DNA of 64,000 bases from Neoechinorhynchus agilis (lineage: Eukaryota; Animalia; Acanthocephala). The DNA lies in NCBI GenBank assembly GCA_051530055.1, contig CM121342.1, positions 4,649,489 through 4,713,488 of the forward strand, written 5' to 3'. The translations under genes were made by a program, and so were the position numbers. The notes beneath the pieces are model-generated. The model saw only the letters and a program-made list of their open reading frames with translations, did not search any database and was not told the DNA's origin. The stretch's first letter is position 1. Each line of letters begins with the position of its first letter. Below, one piece after another: positions 4,232 through 42,010 of this stretch.

Positions 4232-5116
4232 GAACGGCAGATCTCAGTTAGTTTCGATGGCTGTATCCGTCGATAGTTTCAATAAATAGTTTTTTGGCAT
4301 TCATTTGTAAAAAACTTTAGAACGGGTTTTTCGTGTTCTAAAATTCAATTTTGAAGCGATCGTTTTAAACACACACAAAGCCGTCCCAAATAAACGAAAT
4401 CTTATAAGCGGTTGCCCGCATTTCTCGATTGGTCGATTCAAATCACGAAACATCTCTCGATGCGACGCGGATCTGGAAGAATCGTCGCTGATTTCGTCAT
4501 ATTTCCCAAAGTTTGAAGTGAACGCAAATGGTCAAAAATAGCGTTCTTTGTGATTTACGGTGTTGTGGTCATTCTTTACGTCGTCCGCCCGCGCTCGCGA
4601 TGATTTGTTTATTTTCGACTGTCGTCCGTCAGAAATAGCGCCTTATCACTCTGTAAATTAGATCGATATTTCTCGATCGATGGCAATTCATTTTTTCCCA
4701 TTTCGACCAACACAACTTAAATTTCGCAATTCAGGTAAATCCAGAAAAATCTGATCAAATTCTTTGTTTATTATTTTCCTCCAGAGAATCAGAACCTTTT
4801 TAGCATCTCTCAACGCCTTTTTTGCGCGCTTTCGGAATTATTCCAAGAAACTTCGTTGAGAAATTTCCGTTAGAAAAATGTGAGTTTGCTTTTAATAAGA
4901 AATCAGCGAGTTAGCCGAAAAGTTTAGTGGGCGATGTGTCCAAATTTATCGTAAGAACATTACAAAACGGAATGACAGCAATGAAGAAAAAAACTTACGC
5001 AAATCATTCAAAAATGTGGCTAAAGCCGAAACATTGCGACTTCTACGAATGGATAAAATTGTTCTTTTCTTAGCAGTAAAGAGTTTACCGAGAAAAAAAC
5101 GGTGCAGAAGCGTTTC

Positions 5117-8100
5117 TTAGTTCAAAAGCTCATTTTCTCGGACGTCGACGAACTTTACGCATCTCTTCGCTCCTTTGTAGATTCCTGAACAAAACGTAAA
5201 ACGGCGAAAACTCTCGGGCAAATGAAGATTTTCTAGTTTTTATTTCGAAAACAAACTTTTTTCTAAAGACACGACGATTTCATTAGTTCAAAAGCTCATT
5301 TTCTCGGACGTCGACGAACTTTAGGCGTCTCTTCGCTCCTTTGTAGATTCCTGAACAAAACGTAAAACGGCGAAAACTCTCGGGCAAATGAAGATTTTCT
5401 AGTTTTTATTTTCAAAAACAAAACTTTTTTCTAAAGACACGACGATTTCATTAGTTCAAAAGCTCATTTTCTCGGACGTCGACGAACTTTAGGCGTCTCT
5501 TCGCTCCTTTGTAGATTCCTGAACAAAACGTAAAACGGCGAAAACTCTCGGGCAAATGAAGATTTTCTAGTTTTCATTTTTAAAAACAAAACTTTTTTCT
5601 AAAGACACGACGATTTCATTAGTTCAAAAGCTCATTTTCTCGGACGTCGACGAACTTTAGGCGTCTCTACGCTCCTTTGTAGATTCCTGAACAAAACGTA
5701 AAACGGCGAAAACTCTCGGGCAAATGAAGATTTTCTAGTTTTCATTTTGAAAAACAAAACTTTTTTCTAAAGACACGACGATTTCATTAGTTCAAAAGCT
5801 CATTTTCTCGGACGTCGACGAACTTTACGCATCTCTTCGCTCCTTTGTAGATTCCTGAACAAAACGTAAAACGGCGAAAACTCTCGGGTTAATAAAGATT
5901 TTTTAGTTTTTATTTTCGAAAACAAAACTTTTTTCTAAAGACACGACGATTTCATTAGTTCAAAAGCTCATTTTCTCGGACGTCGACGAACTTTAGGCGT
6001 CTCTTCGCTCCTTTGTAGATTCCTGAACAAAACGTAAAACGGCGAAAACTCTCGGTCAATTGAAGATTTTCTAGTTTTCATTTTTAAAAACAAAACTTTT
6101 TTCTAAAGACACGACGATTTCATTAGTTCAAAAGCTCATTTTCTCGGACGTCGACGAACTTTACGCATCTCTTCGCTCCTTTGTAGATTCCTGAACAATA
6201 CGTAAAACGGCGAAAACTCTCGGGCAAATAAAGATTTTTTAGTTTTCATTTTAAAAAAAACTTTTTTCTAAAGACACGACGATTTCATTAGTTCAAAAGC
6301 TCATTTTCTCGGACGTCGACGAACTTTACGCATCTCTTCGCTCCTTTGTAGATTCCTGAACGAAACGTAAAACGGCGAAAACTCGGGTTAATAAAGATTT
6401 TTTAGTTTTTATTTTCGAAAACAAAACTTTTTTCTAAAGACACGACGATTTCATTAGTTCAAAAGCTCATTTTCTCGGACGTCGACGAACTTTACGCGTC
6501 TCTTCGCTCCTTTGTAGATTCCTGAACAAAACGTAAAACGGCGAAAACTCTCGGTCAATTGAAGATTTTCTAGTTTTTATTTTCAAAAACAAAACTTTTT
6601 TCTAAAGACACGACGATTTCATTAGTTCAAAAGCTCATTTTCTCGGACGTCGACGAACTTTACGCGTCTCTTCGCTCCTTTGTAGATTCCTGAACAAAAC
6701 GTAAAACGGCGAAAACTCTCGGGCAAATGAAGATTTTCTAGTTTTTATTTTCAAAAACAAAACTTTTTTCTAAAGACACGACGATTTCATTAGTTCAAAA
6801 GCTCATTTTCTCGGACGTCGACGAACTTTACGCATCTCTACGCTCCTTTGTAGATTCCTGAACAAAACGTAAAACGGCGAAAACTCTCGGGCAAATGAAG
6901 ATTTTCTAGTTTTTATTTTGAAAAACAAAACTTTTTTCTAAAGACACGACGATTTCATTAGTTCAAAAGCTCATTTTCTCGGACGTCGACGAACTTTACG
7001 CATCTCCTGAACAAAACGTAAAACGGCCAAAGCTCTCGGGCAAATGAAGATTTCCTAGTTTTTATTTTCAAAAACAAAACTTTTTTCTAAAGACACGACG
7101 ATTTCATTAGTTCAAAAGCTCATTTTCTCGGACGTCGACGAACTTTAGGCGTCTCTACGCTCCTTTGTAGATTCCTGAACAAAACGTAAAACGGCGAAAA
7201 CTATCGGGTTAATAAAAAAATTTTAGTTTTTATTTTCGAAAACAAAACTTTTTTCTAAAGACACGACGATTTCATTAGTTCAAAAGCTCATTTTCTCGGA
7301 CGTCGACGAACTTTACGCATCTCTTCGCTCCTTTGTAGATTCCTGAACAAAACGTAAAACGGCGAAAACTCTCGGGTTAATAAAGATTTTTTAGTTTTTA
7401 TTTTCGAAAACAAAACTTTTTTCTAAAGACACGACGATTTCATTAGTTCAAAAGCTCATTTTCTCGGACGTCGACGAACTTTAGGCGTCTCTACGCTCCT
7501 TTGTAGATTCCTGAACAAAACGTAAAACGGCGAAAACTCTCGGGCAAATGAAGATTTTCTGGTTTTCATTTTTAAAAACAAAACTTTTTTCTAAAGACAC
7601 GACGATTTCATTAGTTCAAAAGCTCATTTTCTCGGACGTCGACGAACTTTACGCGTCTCTTCGCTCCTTTGTAGATTCCTGAACAAAACGTAAAACGGCG
7701 AAAACTCTCGGGCAAATGAAGATTTTCTAGTTTTCATTTTTAAAAACAAAACTTTTTTCTAAAGACACGACGATTTCATTAGTTCAAAAGCTCATTTTCT
7801 CGGACGTCGACGAACTTTACGCGTCTCTTCGCTCCTTTGTAGATTCCTGAACAAAACGTAAAACGGCGAAAACTCTCGGGCAAATGAAGATTTTCTAGTT
7901 TTTATTTTGAAAAACAAAACTTTTTTCTAAAGACACGACGATTTCATTAGTTCAAAAGCTCATTTTCTCGGACGTCGACGAACTCTACGCATCTCCTGAA
8001 CAAAATGTAAAACGGCCAAAGCTCTCGGGCAAATAAAGATTTTCTAGTTTTCATTTTAAAAAACAAAACTTTTTTCTAAAGACACGACGATTTCATTAGT

Positions 8101-8673
8101 TCAAGAGCTCATTTTCTCGGACGTCGACGAACTCTACGCATCTCCTGAACAAAATGTAAAACGGCCAAAGCTCTCGGGCAAATAAAGATTTTCTAGTTTT
8201 TATTTTCAAAAACAAAACTTTTTTCTAAAGACACGACGATTTCATTAGTTCAAAAGCTCATTTTCTCGGACGTCGACGAACTTTAGGCGTCTCTACGCTC
8301 CTTTGTAGATTCCTGAACAAAACGTAAAACGGCGAAAACTCTCGGGCAAATAAAGATTTTTTAGTTTTTATTTTGAAAAACAAAACTTTTTTCTAAAGAC
8401 ACGACGATTTCATTAGTTCAAAAGCTCATTTTCTCGGACGTCGACGAACTTTAGGCGTCTCTACGCTCCTTTGTAGATTCCTGAGCAAAACGTAAAACGG
8501 CGAAAACTCTCGCTCAATTGAAGATTTTCTAGTTTTCATTTTTAAAAACAAAACTTTTTTCTAAAGACACGACGATTTCATTAGTTCAAAAGCTCATTTT
8601 CTCGGACGTCGACGAACTTTACGCATCTCTACGCTCCTTTGCAGATTCCTGATGAAGACGTAAAACGGCGAAA
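5117..8673. repeat. Satellite A, ~168-bp unit, ~21 copies
   Basis: Unit starts TTAGTTCAAAAGCTCATTTTCTCGGACGTCGACG recur at 5283, 5451 and 5619 (168 spacing). Some units carry a 19-bp deletion. Confidence 0.97.
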
Positions 8674-8976
8674 ACAAAACTTGATTTGGCGTGGAAAGGC
8701 TTTATTTTTGCTATCACTGATGAGTCGTCTATGGGCGATTAGCGTCCTAAATATGATCGTTAAAAAGCATAGCCGCAAAAGGGATAATATTTGTTAGTTA
8801 ATTCGTTAAATTTCGACAAAAAGCTGTAATCCGTGACATTTGTCTTTAACGATTTATTTGTGAAGTCCCTGTAAGTCTTGAGAAACAAAAGAGTAGCTTC
8901 GATTTTGTGTTTTCAAGAAGCGGCTCTCATCCAAATAAATTGTAGTTTGTTTTTTATCTACAATTATATAAATCAT

Positions 8977-14718: not shown

Positions 14719-15432
14719 CTACTCGTCCTTATCTTTTGTATCTTCCAATTCATCCAAGAAAAATTCTCCGGTATTTAGCATATGACTAAGCCGATCGATT
14801 TCCTCGATCCCCTCAGCCTTATCGATTGCGCACCGTATTTGTTCCATTTGGTGAGCCGTCAATTTCAGTTTCTTCTCATCTCTCATCTCCTCGCCAACGC
14901 TATGATCGCGCTTCAAACTGGCACCTGAATTTGCCTTTTCTTCTTTAAAAAGAGCAGCAGCTTCTTGCCGTTCCCGTAGCGTCACTCTCTTAAAGTCCAG
15001 AACTCGAATTTGTGGCATTTTGTGAATGATATGAAGACGATAAGACTTGCTCATTGCAACCGGATTACGCATTAACGAAAGCATCCATAAGCACTTTAGA
15101 CCGAAAAGATGGTCGACTTCTTCGAGATCTTCAATGCTATTATTAGTCAGGATAAGAACCCGAAGATTCGGGATAGTCTCAGGAATGTCTCTCGATATCC
15201 GTTTTATTCGATTATTACTAAGGTAAAGCGATCTAAGCTTCGTCAATAAAGGAAATCCAGCCAATCGCTTGATTTCGTTGTCAGTCAGATCAATGGAATC
15301 GAACTGATTGAGAGTTGCGCCCAAATTCTCGATTACAGGAATACGGAGCCCTCGAATAATCAACTCATAATCCCCCACGGGGCTTATATGTTGAAGACTT
15401 TCCTGGATTAAATCGACCGTTAATCTGCCCAT
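14719..15432 (-). CDS. SNRPA1: U2 small nuclear ribonucleoprotein A' (intronless)
   Basis: MGRLTVDLIQES...YELIIRGLRIPVIENLGATLNQFDSIDLTDNEIKRLAGFPLL LRR series, LRR cap (NPVA....YRLHII..MPQIRVLDFKRV), and C-terminal IRCAIDKA..IEEIDRL..ML.TG. Confidence 0.97.
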   Translation of the reverse strand: MGRLTVDLIQESLQHISPVGDYELIIRGLRIPVIENLGATLNQFDSIDLTDNEIKRLAGFPLLTKLRSLYLSNNRIKRISRDIPETIPNLRVLILTNNSIEDLEEVDHLFGLKCLWMLSLMRNPVAMSKSYRLHIIHKMPQIRVLDFKRVTLRERQEAAALFKEEKANSGASLKRDHSVGEEMRDEKKLKLTAHQMEQIRCAIDKAEGIEEIDRLSHMLNTGEFFLDELEDTKDKDE

Positions 15433-15516
15433 TGCGTGATTGACTCATTTAAATCCAATCACTCGCGTCCGTAATAAATCTACGGAAGAATCACAGTTGC
15501 TGTCTATGGTATTTGT

Positions 15517-15702
15517 TTAATAAAGGAAATTCGACCAATCCCCTGATTTCGTGGTCAGATCAATGGGATCGAACTGATTGAGAGTTGCGCCCAAATTCTC
15601 GGTTACAGGAATACGGAGACCACGACTAATCAACTCATAATCTCCCACGGGGCTTATATGTTGAAGACTTTCCTGGATTAAATCGACCGTTAATCTGCCC
15701 AT
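15517..15702 (-). pseudogene. 5' partial duplicate of SNRPA1 (about codons 1-62, frameshifted)
   Basis: Near-identical to 15247-15432 but with a 4-nt deletion (CTGACTGAC to CTGAC) and premature stop. It is followed by the same ~85-bp spacer that precedes the intact gene. Confidence 0.9.
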
Positions 15703-15715
15703 TGCGTGATTGGCT

Positions 15716-18700
15716 TGTGGCGGCGACTTCTTTCACATGAATGACGGGCAGCCGTAAGAAGTTTCCTTTCGCCGAATGAAGGAAGGACAACACACATTTG
15801 ACCATTGTAGATAATAGTAAATATTTCGTCTTGATTACGTTTCGCCGTTAAATTGGTGACCCCGTCGAGACTGGCCTGGTCAGCGTCCTGACCAGGTCCA
15901 GCTGCCAGTACCACGCCGTCATCATACCAAGGTTCAACTCGGTTGCTCGACATCAGGCCCAGGGAAGCATCGTGACACGCGGACCTCCTTGCTCAACCCA
16001 ACAAGGAAGCGGCGTTCGCCAATGTCACCGATGCCTCGGGACTGGCAGTCGGCGCAGCCCACAAACAACGGAACAAAGACCACACCTGGCAGTTCTATCC
16101 TTTAGCAGGAAGCTTTACGATGCCGAGACGCGATAATCACCTTCAACAAGGTGCTTCAAACATGTCCTGGCACTTGAATCACCGATCCGGTGCTGCCCCC
16201 GGTACCTCCTCTCAAGCAACAGACGACTCGCTGCGGTCGTGGACGAAACGGATTGGTGCGGCGACACCGAGGGGAGGTATGTGGCGGCGACTTCTTTCAC
16301 ATGAATGACGGGCAGCCGTAAGAAGTTTCCTTTCGCCGTTGACCAATGTAGAAATAATAATAATAAATACTTCGTCTTGATTACGTGTCGCCGTTAAATT
16401 GGTGACCCCCGTCGAGACTGGCTGGTCAGCGTCCTGTCCAGGTCCAGCTGCCAGTACCACGCCGTCATCATACCGAGGAGTTCAACTCCCGGTTGCTCGA
16501 CATCAGGCCCAGGGAAGCATCGTGACACGCGGACCTCCTTGCTCAACCCAACAAGGAAGCAGCGTTCGCCAATGTCACCGATGCCTCGGGACTGGCAGTC
16601 GGCGCAGCCCACAAACAACGGAACAAAGACCACACCTGGCAGTTCTATCCTTTAGCAGGAAGCTTTACGATGCCGAGACGCGATAAAGCACCTTCAACAA
16701 GGTGCTTCAAACATGTCCTGGCACTTGAAATCACTGCCCGCGGCACTGTCAACAGACGACCACCAAAACGTTTTCAAGACACAATGCATTAGTGCGGCGA
16801 AACCGAGGAGAGGTAGATGGCGGCGACTTCTTTCACATGAATGACGGGCAGCCGTAAGAAGTTTCCTTTCGCCGAATGAAGGAAGGACAACACACATTTG
16901 ACCATTGTAGATAATAGTAAATATTTCGTCTTGATTACGTTTCGCCGTTAAATTGGTGACCCCGTCGAGACTGGCCTGGTCAGCGTCCCGATCAGGTCCA
17001 GCTGCCAGTACCACGCCGTCATCATACCAAGGTTCAACTCGGTTGCTCGACATCAGGCCCAGGGAAGCATCGTGACACGCGGACCTCCTTGCTCAACCCA
17101 ACAAGGAAGCAGCGTTCGCCAATGTCACCGATGCCTCGGGACTGGCAGTCGGCGCAGCCCACAAACAACGGAACAAAGACGGCACCTGGCAGTTCTATCC
17201 TTCAGCAGGAAGCTTTACGATGCCGAGACGCGATAATCACCTTCAACAAGGTGCTTCAAACATGTCCTGGCACTTGAATCACCGATCCGGTGCTGCCCCC
17301 GGTACCTCCTCTCAAGCAACAGACGACTCGCTGCGGTCGTGGACGAAACGGATTGGTGCGGCGACACCGAGGGGAGGTATGTGGCGGCGACTTCTTTCAC
17401 ATGAATGACGGGCAGCCGTAAGAAGTTTCCTTTCGCCGTTGACCAATGTAGAAATAATAATAATAAATACTTCGTCTTGATTACGTGTCGCCGTTAAATT
17501 GGTGACCCCGTCGAGACTGGCCTGGTCAGCGTCCTGACCAGGTCCAGCTGCCAGTACCACGCCGTCATCATACCGAGGTTCAACTCGGTTGCTCGACATC
17601 AGGCCCAGGGAAGCATCGTGACACGCGGACCTCCTTGCTCAACCCAACAAGGAAGCAGCGTTCGCCAATGTCACCGATGCCTCGGGACTGGCAGTCGGCG
17701 CAGCCCACAAACAACGGAACAAAGACGGCACCTGGCAGTTCTATCCTTCAGCAGGAAGCTTTACGATGCCGAGACGCGATAAAGCACCTTCAACAAGGTG
17801 CTTCAAACATGTCCTGGCACTTGAATCACCGATCCGGTGCTGCCCCCGGTACCTCCTCTCAAGCAACAGACGACTCGCTGCGGTCGTGGACGAAACGGAT
17901 TGGTGCGGCGACACCGAGGGGAGGTATGTGGCGGCGACTTCTTTCACATGAATGACGGGCAGCCGTAAGAAGTTTCCTTTCGCCGTTGACCAATGTAGAA
18001 ATAATAATAATAAATACTTCGTCTTGATTACGTGTCGCCGTTAAATTGGTGACCCCGTCGAGACTGGCCTGGTCAGCGTCCTGACCAGGTCCAGCTGCCA
18101 GTACCACGCCGTCATCATACCGAGGTTCAACTCGGTTGCTCGACATCAGGCCCAGGGAAGCATCGTGACACGCGGACCTCCTTGCTCAACCCAACAAGGA
18201 AGCAGCGTTCGCCAATGTCACCGATGCCTCGGGACTGGCAGTCGGCGCAGCCCACAAACAACGGAACAAAGACGGCACCTGGCAGTTCTATCCTTCAGCA
18301 GGAAGCTTTACGATGCCGAGACGCGATAATCACCTTCAACAAGGTGCTTCAAACATGTCCTGGCACTTGAATCACCGATCCGGTGCTGCCCCCGGTACCT
18401 CCTCTCAAGCAACAGACGACTCGCTGCGGTCGTGGACGAAACGGATTGGTGCGGCGACACCGAGGGGAGGTATGTGGCGGCGACTTCTTTCACATGAATG
18501 ACGGGCAGCCGTAAGAAGTTTCCTTTCGCCGTTGACCAATGTAGAAATAATAATAATAAATACTTCGTCTTGATTACGTGTCGCCGTTAAATTGGTGACC
18601 CCGTCGAGACGGCCTGGTCAGCGTCCTGACCAGGTCCAGCTGGTACCACGCCGTCATCATACCGAGGTTCAACTCGGTTGCTCGACATCAGGCCCAGGGA

Positions 18701-20427
18701 AGCATCGTGCACGCGGACCTCCTTGCTCAACCCAACAAGGAAGCAGCGTTCGCCAATGTCACCGATGCCGGGACTGGCAGTCGGCGCAGCCCACAAACAA
18801 CGGAACAAAGACGGCACCTGGCAGTTCTATCCTTCAGCAGGAAGCTTTACGATGCCGAGACGCGATAAAGCACCTTCAACAAGGTGCTTCAAACATGTCC
18901 TGGCACTTGAATCACCGATCCGGTGCTGCCCCCGGTACCTCCTCTCAAGCAACAGACGACTCGCTGCGGTCGTGGACGAAACGGATTGGTGCGGCGACAC
19001 CGAGGGGAGGTATGTGGCGGCGACTTCTTTCACATGAATGACGGGCAGCCGTAAGAAGTTTCCTTTCGCCGTTGACCAATGTAGAAATAATAATAATAAA
19101 TACTTCGTCTTGATTACGTGTCGCCGTTAAATTGGTGACCCCGTCGAGACTGGCCTGGTCAGCGTCCTGACCAGGTCCAGCTGCCAGTACCACGCCGTCA
19201 TCATACCGAGGTTCAACTCGGTTGCTCGACATCAGGCCCAGGGAAGCATCGTGACACGCGGACCTCCTTGCTCAACCCAACAAGGAAGCAGCGTTCGCCA
19301 ATGTCACCGATGCCTCGGGACTGGCAGTCGGCGCAGCCCACAAACAACGGAACAAAGACGGCACCTGGCAGTTCTATCCTTCAGCAGGAAGCTTTACGAT
19401 GCCGAGACGCGATAATCACCTTCAACAAGGTGCTTCAAACATGTCCTGGCACTTGAAATCACTGCCCGCGGCACTGTCAACAGACGACCACCAAAACGTT
19501 TTCAAGACACAATGCATTAGTGCGGCGAAACCGAGGAGAGGTATATGGCGGCGACTTCTTTCACATGAATGACGGGCAGCCGTAAGAAGTTTCCTTTCGC
19601 CGAATGAAGGAAGGACAACACACATTTGACCATTGTAGATAATAGTAAATATTTCGTCTTGATTACGTTTCGCCGTTAAATTGGTGACCCCGTCGAGACT
19701 GGCCTGGTCAGCGTCCCGATCAGGTCCAGCTGCCAGTACCACGCCGTCATCATACCAAGGTTCAACTCGGTTGCTCGACATCAGGCCCAGGGAAGCATCG
19801 TGACACGCGGACCTCCTTGCTCAACCCAACAAGGAAGCAGCGTTCGCCAATGTCACCGATGCCTCGGGACTGGCAGTCGGCGCAGCCCACAAACAACGGA
19901 ACAAAGACGGCACCTGGCAGTTCTATCCTTCAGCAGGAAGCTTTACGATGCCGAGACGCGATAATCACCTTCAACAAGGTGCTTCAAACATGTCCTGGCA
20001 CTTGAATCACCGATCCGGTGCTGCCCCCGGTACCTCCTCTCAAGCAACAGACGACTCGCTGCGGTCGTGGACGAAACGGATTGGTGCGGCGACACCGAGG
20101 GGAGGTATGTCACCTGGCAGTTCTATCCTTCAGCAGGAAGCTTTACGATGCCGAGACGCGATAAAGCACCTTCAACAAGGTGCTTCAAACATGTCCTGGC
20201 ACTTGAATCACCGATCCGGTGCTGCCCCCGGTACCTCCTCTCAAGCAACAGACGACTCGCTGCGGTCGTGGACGAAACGGATTGGTGCGGCGACACCGAG
20301 GGGAGGTATGTGGCGGCGACTTCTTTCACATGAATGACGGGCAGCCGTAAGAAGTTTCCTTTCGCCGTTGACCAATGTAGAAATAATAATAATAAATACT
20401 TCGTCTTGATTACGTGTCGCCGCTAAA
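15716..20427 (+). mobile_element. Tandem array of a non-autonomous miniature LTR retrotransposon (TRIM) derived from Ty3/Gypsy; 9 LTRs, ~547-bp period
   Basis: LTRs start TGTGGCGGCGAC (GA/TA variants) at 15716, 16280, 16816, 17380, 17927, 18473, 19013, 19544 and 20309, and end GTCGCCG(T/C)TAAA. Each internal LTR is followed by PBS TGGTGACCCCG; each LTR after the first is preceded by PPT GAGG(G/A)GAGG. GGCT flanks both ends (15712-15715, 20428-20431), and the empty-site sequence is visible at 15433-15455. The internal region encodes a relic LLAQPNKEAAFANVTDASGLAVGAA..Q..KDGTWQ / LSFSRKLYDAETR*STFNK, typical of Ty3/Gypsy RNase H. Confidence 0.92.
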
Positions 20428-20431
20428 GGCT

Positions 20432-20613
20432 CATTTGAATCCAATCGGTCGCGTCCGTAATAAATCTACGGAAGATTCGCAGTTACCGTCTTTGGTGTTT
20501 GTTTAATAAAGGAAATTCGGCCAATCGCTTGATTTCGTGGTCAGTTCAATGGACTCGAACTGATTGAGAGTTGCGCCCAAATTCTCGGTTACAGGAAAAC
20601 GGAGCCCACGAAT
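20432..20613 (-). pseudogene. Third SNRPA1 fragment (about codons 27-62) plus spacer
   Basis: 20505-20613 matches SNRPA1 (GLRFPVTENLGATLNQFESIELT) with the same 4-nt deletion as copy 2. 20432-20504 matches the spacer at 15445-15516. Confidence 0.88.
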
Positions 20614-25716: not shown

Positions 25717-27686
25717 TCCAACCTTCTGCAATTTTTTCTTCTAAACTATTCAAAAAACTTAATACTTTTCACAAGAGACTTGAACTACTGCCCTTAGAAA
25801 AACATCTCTCTTTAATCTTTCAAAAGTACTCCTCTTCGATAACATTTTCCATCCTTTTAGTTGCTCCTTCTTCCCCAACCGCTCAATCCTCCAAATGCGA
25901 ATTGATTCCGAGAAAAGAGTGGAATACAACAACCTTACCAATTTTATCAGCCTTCTGCAATTTTTCTTCTAATCTTTTCCAAGAACTCAATACTTTTCAC
26001 AAGAGAGGCGCTCTAATCTTCTCCTCTGAAATCATAGAAAAACACCTCTCTCTCCTTTTAATCTTTCAAAAGTACTCAAAGATCTTTTATTCTCTTCCTG
26101 CTCTTCAATTTCTACCTCGCGTTTCTCCTTTTACTATCCTTTTATTTCCTCGCTAAAATCTCTACCTTCGCTCCTTCTTCCCCAACCGCTCAATCCTCCA
26201 AATGCGAATTGATTCCGAGAAAAGAGTGGAATACAACAACCTTACCAATTTTATCAACCTTCTGCGATTTTTCTTCTAATCTTTTCCAAGAACTCAATAC
26301 TTTTCACAAGAGAGATGCGTTCTAATCTTCTTCTCCGAAATCATAGAAAAACACCTCTCTCTCCCTTTAATCCTTCAAAAGTACTCAAAGATCTTTTATT
26401 CTCTTCCTGCTCTTCAATTTCTACCTCGCGTTTCTCCTTTTACTATCCTTTTATTTCCTCGCTAAAATCTCTACCTTCGCTCCTTCTTCCCCAACCGCTC
26501 AATCCTCCAAATGCGAATTGATTCCGAGAAAAGTGGAATACAACAACCTTACCAATTTTATCAACCTTCTGCGATTTTTCTTCTAATCTTTTCCAAGAAC
26601 TCAATACTTTTCACAAGAGAGATGCGCTCTAATCTTCTCCTCCGAAATCATAGAAAAACACCTCTCTCTCCCTTTTAATCTTTCAAAAGTACTCAAAGAT
26701 CTTTTATTCTCTTCCTGCTCTTCAATTTCTACCTCGCGTTTCTCCTTTTACTATCCTTTTATTTCCTCGCTAAAATCTCTACCTTCGCTCCTTCTTCCCC
26801 AACCGCTCAATCCTCCAAATGCGAATTGATTCCGAGAAAAGAGTGGAATACAACAACCTTACCAATTTTATCAACCTTCTGCGATTTTTCTTCTAATCTT
26901 TTCCAAGAACTCAATACTTTTCACAAGAGAGGCGCTCTAATCTTCTCCTCCGAAATCATAGAAAAACACCTCTCTCTCCTTTTAATCTTTCAAAAGTACT
27001 CAAAGATCTTTTATTCTCTTCCTGCTCTTCAATTTCTACCTCGCGTTTCTCCTTTTACTATCCTTTTATTTCCTCGCTAAAATCTCTACCTTCGCTCCTT
27101 CTTCCCCAACCGCTCAATCCTCCAAATGCGAATTGATTCCGAGAAAAGAGTGGAATACAACAACCTTACCAATTTTATCAACCTTCTGCGATTTTTCTTC
27201 TAATCTTTTCCAAGAACTCAATACTTTTCACAAGAGAGATGCGTTCTAATCTTCTTCTCCGAAATCATAGAAAAACACCTCTCTCTCCCTTTAATCCTTC
27301 AAAAGTACTCAAAGATCTTTTATTCTCTTCCTGCTCTTCAATTTCTACCTCGCGTTTCTCCTTTTACTATCCTTTTATTTCCTCGCTAAAATCTCTACCT
27401 TCGCTCCTTCTTCCCCAACCGCTCAATCCTCCAAATGCGAATTGATTCCGAGAAACCAATTTTATCACTTCTGCATTTTCTTCTAATCTTTTCCAGAACT
27501 AATACTTTTCACAAGAGAGGCGTACCAATTTTATCAACCTTCTGCAATTTTTCTTCTAATCTTTTCCAAGAACTCAATACTTTTCACAAGAGAGATGCGC
27601 TCTAATCTTCTCCTCCGAAATCATAGAAAAACACCTCTCTCTCTCCCTTTAATCCTTCAAAAGTACTCAAAGATCTTTTATTCTCT
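25717..27686. repeat. Satellite D, ~308-bp pyrimidine-rich unit, ~6.4 copies
   Basis: CTTCTTCCCCAACCGC at 25867, 26174, 26483, 26791, 27098 and 27407. Confidence 0.95.
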
Positions 27687-28765
27687 GTTAAATATTCTAG
27701 CAATATTCAGTAAGATTGTAACGATGAAGTTCAATGTTGTTAAATATCTTTACGAAAAAATTGATCAATGAATCGATCTTTTTAAGGCTTGCAAAGTCTC
27801 CATTTTAACTTAGATCAAAAGACAGCGCCCGGTCGCTCATGCAAAGTTTTTCCCATTCTCATTGCGCTTAAAGCTGTCGTTTTAACTCTTAATTTTAATT
27901 TTTATGTGAAATATAAGCGCACATAATTAAAAAGTCTTTGTGGTTTCAGACCTTAATTATAATCTTCTTCTTAAAATACAATATCAATCGGAAGTATTAT
28001 CTTAATTACGAACTTTTCCTTTTTTTAATGCGAAAAGATTGTGTATTTGACTTTTTCAAGAACCTATAAATCTCGTTCTTAAAACGAATTCCATTTTTTG
28101 GCATTAAGTGCAATTCAAATGGATATTTCACCTTTTATTCGGGGTCTATGATGTTTTATGCATTTTCGAAAGGATCCGACTAACTTGGAGCTCACAGCTT
28201 GAAACGCCTTATGGACAAACGTTAAAAGCTTTTTTAAAAGGCCATTTCGGCAATCAGCGGGGGAGCAAGTAAACATCGTTTTGCTCATCCATTTAAAGTA
28301 TTCGCACACCATTGCTTAAGAATTTAAACTAAATGTCGATTGTGTGATTGCAGAATTTAAATCGTTACAAGTCTACACTCGAGCGGTAAATGATTTCTTT
28401 TCGATAAAAAAGACATTGTTCGAAACTGATGATGATGATGATGATGAACAAGAGGTTCGCAGAACATTTTAAGAATCGAAAAGATAGACTTGTAACCATA
28501 ATAATTCTAATCGAGATTATGCACATGAGTCTATATAATATTTTTTAATTTCCTTTAATTTACCTTTTATATTATTAAGCTCCATGGAGGTTCATTAAGC
28601 CATAACAAATTTCCTGTTTTTCTAAGTGCACAACGAATGGCTCCCGCAGAGCGAACCAATCAGCATGCGCCATTTTACACCGCTGGAACTTTCTAGTTGG
28701 TAGATCAGAAGTTAACTCGTGTTTACCATTTAACTGTCGTAACGTCGCAACTAAACTCTGTCAAA

Positions 28766-40605: not shown

Positions 40606-42010
40606 GACGAACTTTACGCATCTCTACGCTCCTTTGTAGATTCCTGAACAAAACGTAAAACGGCGAAAACTCTCGGGTAAATGAAGATTTTCTAGTTTTT
40701 ATTTTCGAAAACAAAACTTTTTTCTAAAGACACGACGATTTCATTAGTTCAAAAGCTCATTTTCTCGGACGTCGACGAACTTTACGCGTCTCTTCGCTCC
40801 TTTGTAGATTCCTGAACAAAACGTAAAACGGCGAAAACTCTCGGGCAAATAAAGATTTTCTAGTTTTTATTTTGAAAAACAAAACTTTTTTCTAAAGACA
40901 CGACGATTTCATTAGTTCAAAAGCTCATTTTCTCGGACGTCGACGAACTTTACGCGTCTCTTCGCTCCTTTGTAGATTCCTGAACAAAACGTAAAACGGC
41001 GAAAACTCTCGGGCAAATGAAGATTTTCTAGTTTTTATTTTCGAAAACAAAACTTTTTTCTAAAGACACGACGATTTCATTAGTTCAAAAGCTCATTTTC
41101 TCGGACGTCGACGAACTTTAGGCGTCTCTTCGCTCCTTTGTAGATTCCTGAACAAAACGTAAAACGGCGAAAACTCTCGGGCAAATGAAGATTTTCTAGT
41201 TTTTATTTTGAAAAACAAAACTTTTTTCTAAAGACACGACGATTTCATTAGTTCAAAAGCTCATTTTCTCGGACGTCGACGAACTTTACGCGTCTCTTCG
41301 CTCCTTTGTAGATTCCTGAACAAAACGTAAAACGGCGAAAACTCTCGGGCAAATAAAGATTTTCTAGTTTTTATTTTCGAAAACAAAACTTTTTTCTAAA
41401 GACACGACGATTTCATTAGTTCAAAAGCTCATTTTCTCGGACGTCGACGAACTTTACGCGTCTCTTCGCTCCTTTGTAGATTCCTGAACAAAACGTAAAA
41501 CGGCGAAAACTCTCGGGCAAATGAAGATTTTCTAGTTTTTATTTTGAAAAACAAAACTTTTTTCTAAAGACACGACGATTTCATTAGTTCAAAAGCTCAT
41601 TTTCTCGGACGTCGACGAACTTTACGCGTCTCTTCGCTCCTTTGTAGATTCCTGAACAAAACGTTAAACGGCGAAAACTCTCGGGCAAATAAAGATTTTC
41701 TAGTTTTTATTTTGAAAAACAAAACTTTTTTCTAAAGACACGACGATTTCATTAGTTCAAAAGCTCATTTTCTCGGACGTCGACGAACTTTAGGCGTCTC
41801 TTCGCTCCTTTGTAGATTCCTGAACAAAACGTAAAACGGCGAAAACTCTCGGGCAAATGAAGATTTTCTAGTTTTTATTTTCAAAAACAAAACTTTTTTC
41901 TAAAGACACGACGATTTCATTAGTTCAAAAGCTCATTTTCTCGGACGTCGACGAACTTTACGCGTCACCTGAACAAAACGTTAAACGGCGAAAACTCTCG
42001 GGCAAATAAA
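40606..42010. repeat. Satellite A, second locus (~8 copies, same orientation)
   Basis: Same 168-bp unit as 5117-8673 but starting and ending at different phases, with unrelated flanks. Confidence 0.97.

Follow-up and report, generated by a model that had tools for sequence, protein, structure and literature searches.

Positions 15716-20427 of the window (the whole 64-kb stretch of Neoechinorhynchus agilis DNA analysed, GCA_051530055.1) are occupied by a 4.7-kb (LTR-internal)8-LTR block. The earlier note had described an (LTR-internal)n-LTR structure with nine shared LTRs of 119 or 137 bp, and we confirmed both the number and the lengths (137 bp in LTR1, LTR3 and LTR8; 119 bp in the remaining six). 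Its figure of about 428 bp for the internal regions fits most of the eight, which measure 412–428 bp, but not the last, which is 627 bp long and combines a normal-size region with a truncated ninth unit; the latter accounts for the 201-bp period reported by TRF. The units comprise two sequence variants, with A or B LTRs and x or y tails, in mosaic order. The block was correctly described as GC-rich (54.5% within the array, 36–43% outside), and a blastn search with the array unit returned no match elsewhere in the 64-kb window. The LTRs and the truncated unit are:

15716..15852, + strand: LTR1, variant A, 137 bp, begins TGTGGCGGCGAC; 5' end of the entire insertion
16280..16398, + strand: LTR2, variant B, 119 bp, 100% pairwise identical to LTR4, LTR5, LTR6 and LTR7
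16816..16952, + strand: LTR3, variant A, 137 bp, first letters GAT, preceded by a 'y' tail
17380-17498, 17927-18045, 18473-18591 and 19013-19131, + strand: LTR4, LTR5, LTR6 and LTR7, variant B, identical to LTR2
19544-19680, + strand: LTR8, variant A, first letters TAT, preceded by a 'y' tail
20108..20308, + strand: truncated ninth unit, the first 3 nt of an LTR (TGT) following a PPT and fused to the 3' 198 bp of an internal region, including its PPT
20309..20427, + strand: LTR9, variant B with one substitution, ends GTCGCCGCTAAA; 3' end of the entire insertion

As in LTR retrotransposons, the repeats are direct and have short inverted termini starting TG. The inverted match of 10/12 claimed for the LTR termini holds for the outer ends of the array (TGTGGCGGCGAC...GTCGCCGCTAAA), but drops to 9/12 for the internal LTRs, whose 3' end is GTCGCCGTTAAA, and LTR3 and LTR8 begin GAT and TAT, not TGT. 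A single element (LTR-internal-LTR, 119 + 428 + 119 bp) amounts to 666 bp without coding capacity, a broken RNase H fragment being its sole protein signal, within the bounds we applied for TRIMs (<~1 kb, terminal repeats of 100–250 bp, coding capacity absent). L9I8 and one truncated unit lie within a single GGCT duplication, the arrangement that defines a TA-TRIM (PMC4717578).

The insertion site can be reconstructed from neighbouring copies of a host duplication:

15442..15445, + strand: unoccupied paralogous site GACT in the neighbouring host-duplication copy, 10-13 nt upstream of the U2A' start codon
15519..15715, - strand: host target, the U2A' 5' end duplicated in tandem (~270 bp), second copy, continuing at 20432-20504
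15712..15715, + strand: left TSD copy GGCT, from empty-site reconstruction
20428..20431, + strand: right TSD copy GGCT, from empty-site reconstruction
From 20505: third partial copy of the U2A' 5'-end duplication

Removal of the block together with one GGCT gave a gapless alignment with the neighbouring paralogue (96% identical), so that a TSD and a recoverable empty site are both present, as in LTR retrotransposons. The 4-bp GGCT duplication reported around the whole array is thus real. The empty site, said to lie in a paralogous spacer, was also found, as GACT in gapless alignment, but the 'spacer' is the tandemly duplicated 5' end of U2A'. The U2A' duplicate takes in upstream sequence and ~61 codons, interrupted by a frameshift, and the insertion lies ahead of the start codon of this duplicated pseudo-copy, at a distance of 13 bp. 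The array sits just upstream of the splicing-factor gene U2A' itself, 284 bp from its start codon, and may therefore affect the U2A' promoter.

Each unit carries the signals expected for reverse transcription:

15854..15871, + strand: PBS of unit 1, the 18-mer TGGTGACCCCGTCGAGAC, 1 nt past the LTR
16954, 17500, 18047, 18593, 19133 and 19682, + strand: further exact PBS 18-mers
17517..17548, + strand: stable hairpin directly 3' of the PBS, core CCUGGUCAG-CGUC-CUGACCAGG, in every unit
17916..17926, + strand: PPT GAGGGGAGGTA, 11 nt, adjoining LTR5

TGGTGACCCCGTCGAGAC follows LTR1-8 after a 1-nt spacer and is exact in seven of the eight units; the PBS of unit 2 (from 16400) has one additional C, and unit 6 is missing the T directly after the 18-mer. 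Every PBS opens with TGG and, as in LTR retrotransposons, is paired with a PPT. The latter had been claimed before every LTR after the first, and it does occupy the 11 nt before each of LTR2-9, as GAGGGGAGGTA or, before LTR3 and LTR8, as GAGGAGAGGTA. The hairpin region (17499-17560) had a minimum free energy of -27.6 kcal/mol (z = -2.65); in the A variant, the 3' arm has one mismatch and one wobble, and compensatory change is therefore absent. With PBS, PPT and a single TSD in place, the identification as a non-autonomous miniature LTR retrotransposon in tandem form stands.

We also considered whether another small LTR-bearing class, either a retrozyme, whose repeats hold a hammerhead ribozyme and whose RNA is circular, or a Cassandra-like element, whose LTR harbours a small-RNA gene, might lie here. 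Retrozymes (PMC5680766) have small size, tandem arrangement, PBS, PPT and 4-bp TSD in common with the array; no Rfam family, however, scored above threshold in the window, and we regard this class as extremely improbable. A retrozyme was rejected at Rfam 15 sensitivity, with no hammerhead at gathering or permissive thresholds, and the Cassandra/Helenus/Ajax type was rejected with no 5S rRNA, tRNA or snRNA-like sequence in the LTR (Rfam, ARAGORN). The permissive Rfam scan of 15600-17500 yielded one chance-level match (E = 4.6) and no hammerhead, 5S, tRNA or snRNA; ARAGORN found no tRNA.

The internal regions retain a piece of pol, located as follows:

15898-16157, + strand: RNase H relic of unit 1; an equivalent stretch is present in every unit
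17544..17812, + strand: RNase H relic of unit 4 (Pfam, homologues, tblastn HSPs in two frames)

The relic has one in-frame stop and at least one frameshift, covers positions 17-80 of 100 of the Pfam profile RT_RNaseH_2, and keeps TDAS. An RNase H profile match had been named as a check of the Gypsy origin: with one frameshift joined manually, on which the match depends, the relic scored 34 bits (E = 3e-8; cut-off 29.8 bits), whereas in a single frame it reached only 18.9 bits, below the cut-off. A full HMMER scan of 1.84 billion representative proteins gave single-stretch matches with 45-52% identity over about 60 residues. The true relatives are RT-RNaseH-integrase polyproteins; among the best of them, with identities of ~50%, are two proteins from diphyllobothriidean cestodes. 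In the relic, ~65 RNase H residues survive. Pfam-scanned homologues carry RT_RNaseH, together with Integrase_H2C2 and rve in P0136 and P0137, and RVT_1 in P0128, P0130 and P0137. At the level of sequence, these results identify the element as derived from a Ty3/Gypsy-type element, as had been claimed. The further claim that the pol 3' end is kept found no support: the ~110 nt between relic and PPT gave no profile signal in any frame and did not raise the score when added. Within the window, pol-like signal was limited to the array (tblastn). The coincidence of PBS and PPT at correct offsets, a TSD with an empty site and an RNase H profile match is not due to chance.

We then compared the cis features with those published for CsRn1-like elements, which have a 4-bp TSD, LTR ends TGT...AAA or TGT...ATA, and a PBS, TGGTGA(G/C)CCCG(T/A), complementary to tRNA-Trp (PMC2582038). 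All three hallmarks are present: the TSD GGCT, LTR ends TGT...AAA, and a PBS whose first 12 nt, TGGTGACCCCGT, match the clade consensus at 12/12, this consensus coming from the literature and not from the host's own tRNA-Trp. The AA end that had been called non-canonical is therefore itself a CsRn1-clade trait. The CsRn1-type assignment, proposed earlier from tRNA-Trp priming and the 4-bp TSD, fits these published hallmarks and is partly supported by them. The complement of the 18-nt PBS is shaped like a tRNA 3' end, and the T-arm pattern predicted from it led to 22 real tRNA genes in metagenomes. These are tRNA-Lys(UUU) genes in dense tRNA clusters, probably of phage or bacterial origin, and not animal tRNA-Trp; it is therefore the first 12 nt of the PBS, together with the literature, that point to a primer of putative tRNA-Trp type.

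Taken together, we consider it highly probable that the block goes back to a single insertion, by integrase, of a non-autonomous TRIM of CsRn1-type Ty3/Gypsy descent. A CsRn1-type parent would have lost nearly all coding sequence, leaving a TRIM whose transcription would start in the LTR and whose RNA would rely on an autonomous relative's proteins for packaging. Minus-strand synthesis would be primed at the PBS by a host tRNA of the tRNA-Trp type, and the plus strand from the polypurine tract. Integrase would process the TGT...AAA ends and make a 4-bp staggered cut, producing the GGCT duplication. The array would then have grown, most likely by unequal exchange between LTRs of sister chromatids or homologues, and the second variant would have entered via gene conversion or cDNA recombination. 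Both mobilisation in trans and this growth route are inferred from a single locus, which is also the basis of the earlier proposal of a recently amplified family; the 64-kb window and the searchable protein and DNA collections yielded neither another copy nor a solo LTR nor an autonomous partner.

The mosaic order of the variants bears on how the array arose. Two 'y' tails were located:

16735..16815, + strand: 'y' 3' tail of unit 2
19463-19543, + strand: 'y' 3' tail of unit 7

The 'y' tail shares ~60% identity with the more common 'x' tail, and the LTR next after it is always A-type. The units are near-identical, as had been described, with five B LTRs (LTR2, 4, 5, 6 and 7) mutually 100% identical, but the array is a two-variant mosaic with differing terminal LTRs: A and B LTRs share 95.6% identity with 28 gapped columns, and LTR1 is A, whereas LTR9 is B. 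Such unlike terminal LTRs are not predicted by simple reverse transcription and local duplication. Divergence within a unit is very uneven (~0-1% in the relic vs ~40% in the tail), and extra recombination steps must therefore be assumed. An AATC/AAAGC site switches form with each successive unit, starting in unit 1 and continuing into the truncated one at the end, and unit 6 has five private deletions of 1-3 bp.

The mosaic could also arise if the array had integrated already multimeric instead of growing in place from a monomer. Its source would then be a cDNA, concatemeric or recombinant, copied from two variant RNAs packaged together, or else read-through transcription of an older array or of a 1-LTR circle. 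The whole mosaic lies within one TSD, the interleaved A/B LTRs and x/y tails and the AATC/AAAGC alternation resemble a dimeric higher-order unit, and the tandem LTR-retrotransposon literature keeps this route open, citing yeast LTR-mediated cDNA recombination (PMC11899658). Standard reverse transcription, even of a read-through template, would however give identical terminal LTRs, unlike LTR1 and LTR9, and the identical B LTRs of four adjacent units (4-7) fit local unequal exchange. We therefore hold multimeric integration to be unlikely, though the most serious competitor. The stronger proposal, that the interleaving under one TSD reflects an integrated heteromultimeric cDNA and that the TRIM array transposes as an array, e.g., by way of a read-through transcript or one derived from a circle, copied with template switches between RNAs packaged together, we consider quite improbable; if true, the tandem-insertion route discussed in plants would have a natural counterpart in an animal.

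Equally doubtful is a locus-specific satellite, that is, a long-dead single insertion amplified by DNA-level mechanisms only, with no living family and no mobility. The lack of a further copy in 64 kb, the tandem repeats that fill ~42% of the window and indicate a genome that readily expands arrays, and the lack of a close autonomous partner among the representative proteins, where the best true matches are so distant, are all consistent with it. Two clearly distinct variants nevertheless imply more than one source sequence, and almost every unit retains an intact PBS and PPT and terminal motifs that show no decay; moreover, the protein libraries probably do not include host repeats, which makes absence there weak evidence. 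Part of the copy number and mosaic could instead be an assembly artefact (a shorter array that was collapsed, expanded or mixed between haplotypes), since near-identical 547-bp units are difficult to assemble and the private deletions of unit 6 are typical of long-read consensus errors. Yet unique sequence makes up the flanks, the TSD and both junctions, which agree with one another, and what separates the variants is not noise but large indels and a tail that has diverged. We judge an artefact slightly less probable still, and it would change how many units there are but leave the kind of element as it is.

Few TRIMs are known from animals, with reports from ants, taeniid cestodes and bivalves. 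The RNase H piece and the three CsRn1-clade cis signatures make this an unusually clear case of an autonomous Gypsy element shrinking to a miniature that is parasitic on its own relatives. The locus also appears to capture a retroelement on its way to a satellite-like array whose two variants recombine in situ, within a window rich in tandem repeats. The array structure, hallmarks and candidate origins are already in the literature, and current understanding is unchanged; the array is a further example of a tandemly arrayed TRIM, a kind already described many times.

CsRn1-clade elements (CsRn1, PwRn1, AgCR-1 to -14) are alike in PBS, LTR ends and 4-bp TSD, and their RNase H has a DAS motif, matched by TDAS in the relic (PMC2582038). 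They are, however, autonomous (PwRn1, 5.4 kb), with a CHCC Gag (CX2HX9CX3C) and full Pol, whereas the array element is ~0.67 kb and has no gag, protease, RT or integrase.

Tandem L(n)I(n-1) structures under one TSD are known for plant TRIMs (PMC4717578), rice LTR retrotransposons (PMC11899658), taeniid ta-TRIMs (PMC4558846) and bivalve TRIMs (PMC6934838), which extends the earlier note's statement that they occur in plants and taeniid cestodes. Plant TA-TRIMs (Zma-SMART, Wukong, Cassandra; PMC4717578) are likewise non-coding, with shared LTRs, one TSD around the array, and a PBS and PPT per unit. They have a 5-bp TSD, other PBS types and usually 2-4 internal regions, in contrast to the eight internals, 4-bp TSD, tRNA-Trp-type PBS, RNase H relic and animal host of the present array.

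Rice TLI1 and TLI2 (PMC11899658) share the LTR/internal alternation and single TSD but are full-size coding elements. The LTRs within one TLI1 tandem are 85-89% identical despite a single insertion, comparable to the A/B difference here, and there, too, the tandem may have been inserted as such or have formed afterwards by illegitimate recombination. That study also cites Drosophila, kangaroo-centromere and yeast cases of tandem LTR retrotransposons.

The taeniid ta-TRIM (PMC4558846) is an animal TRIM with a mostly 4-bp TSD in Echinococcus multilocularis and occasional tandem repeats ascribed to unequal crossing over; its candidate partner, lennie/Saci2, was inferred from common LTR ends, PBS and TSD length. 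It shows no sequence similarity to the array and has a tRNA-Leu PBS, canonical ends and a Saci2 lineage, whereas the array has a CsRn1-type PBS and TGT...AAA ends. The biv-TRIM (PMC6934838), also from animals, occurs as canonical copies, solo repeats and tandem arrays, and differences between its terminal repeats were explained by inter-element recombination; it has no identifiable canonical PBS or coding relic, whereas the array combines a textbook PBS with a relic of RNase H.

The block at 15716-20427 (forward strand) is well supported as a tandem-array TRIM (a miniature LTR retrotransposon) derived from a Gypsy element and bearing CsRn1-type cis features. Its GC content reached 54.5% in 16001-20000, versus 29-43% in the AT-rich sequence outside the block. 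The window is collinear with chromosome CM121342.1 (16.4 Mb) of assembly GCA_051530055.1, at an offset of +4,649,488. With a period above 500 bp, the array escaped Tandem Repeats Finder, which reported just a 201-bp internal duplication (19911-20311); seeded repeat finding, together with direct searches for motifs, revealed a period of ~547 bp, or 564 bp, across the whole block. The short repeat occurs nine times: LTR1, LTR3 and LTR8 are 137 bp long (variant A), and the remaining six are 119 bp (variant B). The eight internal regions between them each measure 412-428 bp, apart from one truncated unit:

20108-20308: truncated unit after unit 8, TGT fused to the final 198 bp of an internal region

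The primer binding site (PBS), TGGTGACCCCGTCGAGAC, lies 1 nt downstream of each of LTR1-8, and the polypurine tract (PPT), GAGGGGAGGTA or in two cases GAGGAGAGGTA, abuts the 5' side of LTR2-9; the outermost termini of the array read TGTGGCGGCGAC...GTCGCCGCTAAA. The LTR/internal layout, the motif offsets and the GGCT on both sides confirm the tandem-array TRIM with PBS, PPT and target site duplication (TSD) described in the earlier note. The array contains no called gene models.

We then considered the insertion site. GGCT stands on either side of the block, and the flanks, joined minus one GGCT, gave a gapless alignment to the neighbouring paralogous sequence, which carries GACT at that position; the block is one clean insertion. 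The empty site in a neighbouring paralogue had been recognised previously and stands, but this "paralogous spacer", far from being anonymous DNA, belongs to a tandemly duplicated 5' end of the host splicing-factor gene U2A'. The duplication lies at 15245-15715 and 20428-20611, with a period of ~270 bp and ~2.7 copies (the third partial), each containing approximately the first 61 codons and ~85 bp upstream.

start codon at 15432, minus strand: U2A' copy 1, the working gene
ATG at 15702, minus strand: U2A' copy 2, frameshifted by a 4-bp deletion and interrupted by the array 13 bp upstream of its ATG
from 20505: U2A' copy 3, partial

Given this layout of the duplication copies, the array lies, divergently oriented, upstream of the functional U2A' gene, 284 bp from its start codon. 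The U2A' protein had a best database identity of 51%, its named top matches being molluscs, a brachiopod and nemerteans, while rotifers ranked lower; this indicates a divergent lineage of invertebrates that may be spiralian.

A broken RNase H fragment (the relic) begins ~45 nt after the PBS in the internal region, immediately 3' of a hairpin. A single-frame internal region matched the RT_RNaseH_2 profile weakly (18.9 bits). The joined peptide (...LLAQPNKEAAFANVTDASGLAVGAAHKQRNKDGTWQ / LAVLSFSRKLYDAETRXSTFNKVLQ), in which two frames are merged at one frameshift and X marks one in-frame stop, scored 34 bits (E = 3e-8; profile positions 17-79 of 100; Pfam cut-off 29.8 bits), so that the RNase H reading of the earlier note passed its profile check, after manual joining of the frameshift. 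When 1.84 billion representative proteins were scanned in full with HMMER, 19 matched the relic. The top three were discarded as compositional, since they matched in multiple stretches and the two that were scanned proved to be bacterial repeat proteins; the true homologues matched in a single stretch, with 45-52% identity across ~60 residues. Every true homologue scanned with Pfam contained RT_RNaseH domains, accompanied by RVT_1 in P0128, P0130 and P0137 and by Integrase_H2C2 and rve in P0136 and P0137; as predicted by these profiles, the domain set is that of a Ty3/Gypsy-type polyprotein. Few of the homologues have named sources, and these include the tapeworms Spirometra and Sparganum and a mayfly. 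Within the window, the homologue proteins matched the array only.

Profile searches in plausible frames detected no protein ancestry for the ~110 nt that separate the relic from the PPT, and adding this stretch raised neither the Pfam score nor the coverage, leaving the "pol 3' end" proposed earlier for the internal region unsupported. A 'TDD/TDH' motif reading in the 3' tail was likewise dropped, as further frame joins gave no gain in Pfam score or coverage.

The hairpin itself (17517-17548, with an equivalent site in every unit) consists of a perfect 9-bp stem and a 4-nt loop directly 3' of the PBS, with a minimum free energy of -27.6 kcal/mol and z = -2.65 in a 62-nt context. Its A-variant form is weaker, with one mismatch and one wobble and without compensation. 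The hairpin may serve as a signal for packaging or dimerisation.

Unit alignment revealed that the array is built from two variants. LTR1 to LTR9 are, in order, of types A, B, A, B, B, B, B, A, B; two indels, of 23 bp and 5 bp, and five substitutions separate A from B. Two forms, only ~60% identical, likewise occur in the 3' tail of the internal region, x in units 1, 3, 4, 5, 6 and 8 and y in units 2 and 7; the y tail always precedes an A-type LTR with a GAT or TAT start, not TGT. Except for a small indel (AATC/AAAGC) that alternates strictly from one unit to the next, the truncated last unit included, the relic is nearly invariant. Five of the B LTRs are mutually 100% identical, whereas the terminal LTRs of the array differ in type (A versus B). 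One insertion followed by only local duplication cannot yield two variants so different while the other copies are identical. The comparison of units points instead to a mosaic, in which either other family members donated sequence, by gene conversion or by cDNA recombination, or a mixed multimer was inserted; either route requires more than one source copy, and this is the sole indirect evidence here for a family. Tandem LTR retrotransposons elsewhere present the same two-way choice of origin, including one rice tandem with a single TSD whose LTRs are just 85-89% identical (PMC11899658).

Unit 6 (18473-19012) carries five private deletions of 1-3 bp relative to otherwise identical neighbours, which reflect either genuine decay of this single unit or assembly consensus errors.

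Further copies were sought in collections representing the host genome only to 10 kb around the window genes. The joined relic gave no match to proteins in a word-indexed search, nor did an exact look-up of an array ORF, nor did the six-frame translation of a whole unit against 5.8 billion proteins, which was aimed at gene models overlapping other copies. Exact look-ups of two ORFs close to the ends of the window likewise yielded no recorded product. Patterns for the LTR-PBS junction and the LTR 5' end had 0 matches in metagenome, prokaryotic genome and viral DNA collections, and a literature search with the PBS string returned unrelated papers only.

The description of the PwRn1 and mosquito AgCR elements gives the cis hallmarks of CsRn1-like elements as 4-bp TSDs, LTR ends changed from TGT...ACA to TGT...AAA or TGT...ATA, and a PBS, 5'-TGGTGA(G/C)CCCG(T/A)-3', complementary to tRNA-Trp (PMC2582038). 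The array has all three (GGCT, TGT...AAA and TGGTGACCCCGT), and its PBS matches the consensus at 12/12 positions. Therefore, the AA terminus, which is present as first reported and was then called non-canonical, is a trait of the CsRn1 clade (TGT...AAA in PMC2582038) rather than damage. Of the defining protein features of the clade, the CHCC Gag motif is absent, no gag being left. A pol phylogeny is unreliable for the relic because the RNase H remnant spans only 65 residues. The element works like a CsRn1-type derivative and bears the cis signature of the clade, which is distinct from proven membership.

No tRNA genes were found in the window. The 18-nt PBS was used to predict the T-arm of its matching tRNA, and metagenomes were scanned for GTTCRAGTCTCGACGGGGTCA; each of the 22 matches lay at the 3' end of a genuine tRNA gene, and the PBS complement is therefore tRNA-shaped over its full length. 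All 22 genes were tRNA-Lys(UUU) within dense tRNA clusters. The contigs concerned (L003-L024) have as many as 23 tRNA genes per cluster, and in each contig tRNA-Lys(UUU) ends with the 21-nt PBS-derived pattern; they look like phage-derived or bacterial tRNA islands unrelated to the host, and the genes are uninformative on the animal primer. The first 12 nt of the PBS, together with the literature, suggest tRNA-Trp as the primer.

Tandem repeats make up ~42% of the window (27.1 kb). Besides the array, at least 11 separate satellite arrays (periods 111-348 bp, 2-21 copies each) fill the space between compact, intron-poor genes for U2A', asparaginase, a Bcl-2 family protein, arrestin and an armadillo-repeat protein. 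A 168-bp satellite occurs at 5113-8675 and 40606-41966, ~32 kb apart, with 92-96% identity; similarity ends at the array edges and the flanks are unrelated, which suggests a family spreading to new sites. An extreme GC skew (-0.48) at 26001-28000 coincides with a further array:

25863-27455: 307-bp repeat array, 5.2 copies, 97% identity

Retrozymes and small-RNA-derived LTR elements were rejected as identities for the TRIM array, because neither ribozyme nor small-RNA models matched; nor was there a tRNA gene. In plants, L(n)I(n-1) arrays that share LTRs under a single TSD are known as TA-TRIMs and occur in 35 of 43 surveyed genomes (PMC4717578). Tandem ta-TRIMs in taeniid cestodes have been ascribed to unequal crossing over (PMC4558846), bivalve TRIMs form tandems too (PMC6934838), and full-size elements do likewise in rice (PMC11899658), a paper that also cites tandem cases in Drosophila, kangaroo centromeres and yeast. 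The array described here shares the L(n)I(n-1) form under one TSD with the plant, taeniid, bivalve and rice tandems, and adds a further example to a known kind of element rather than founding a new one.
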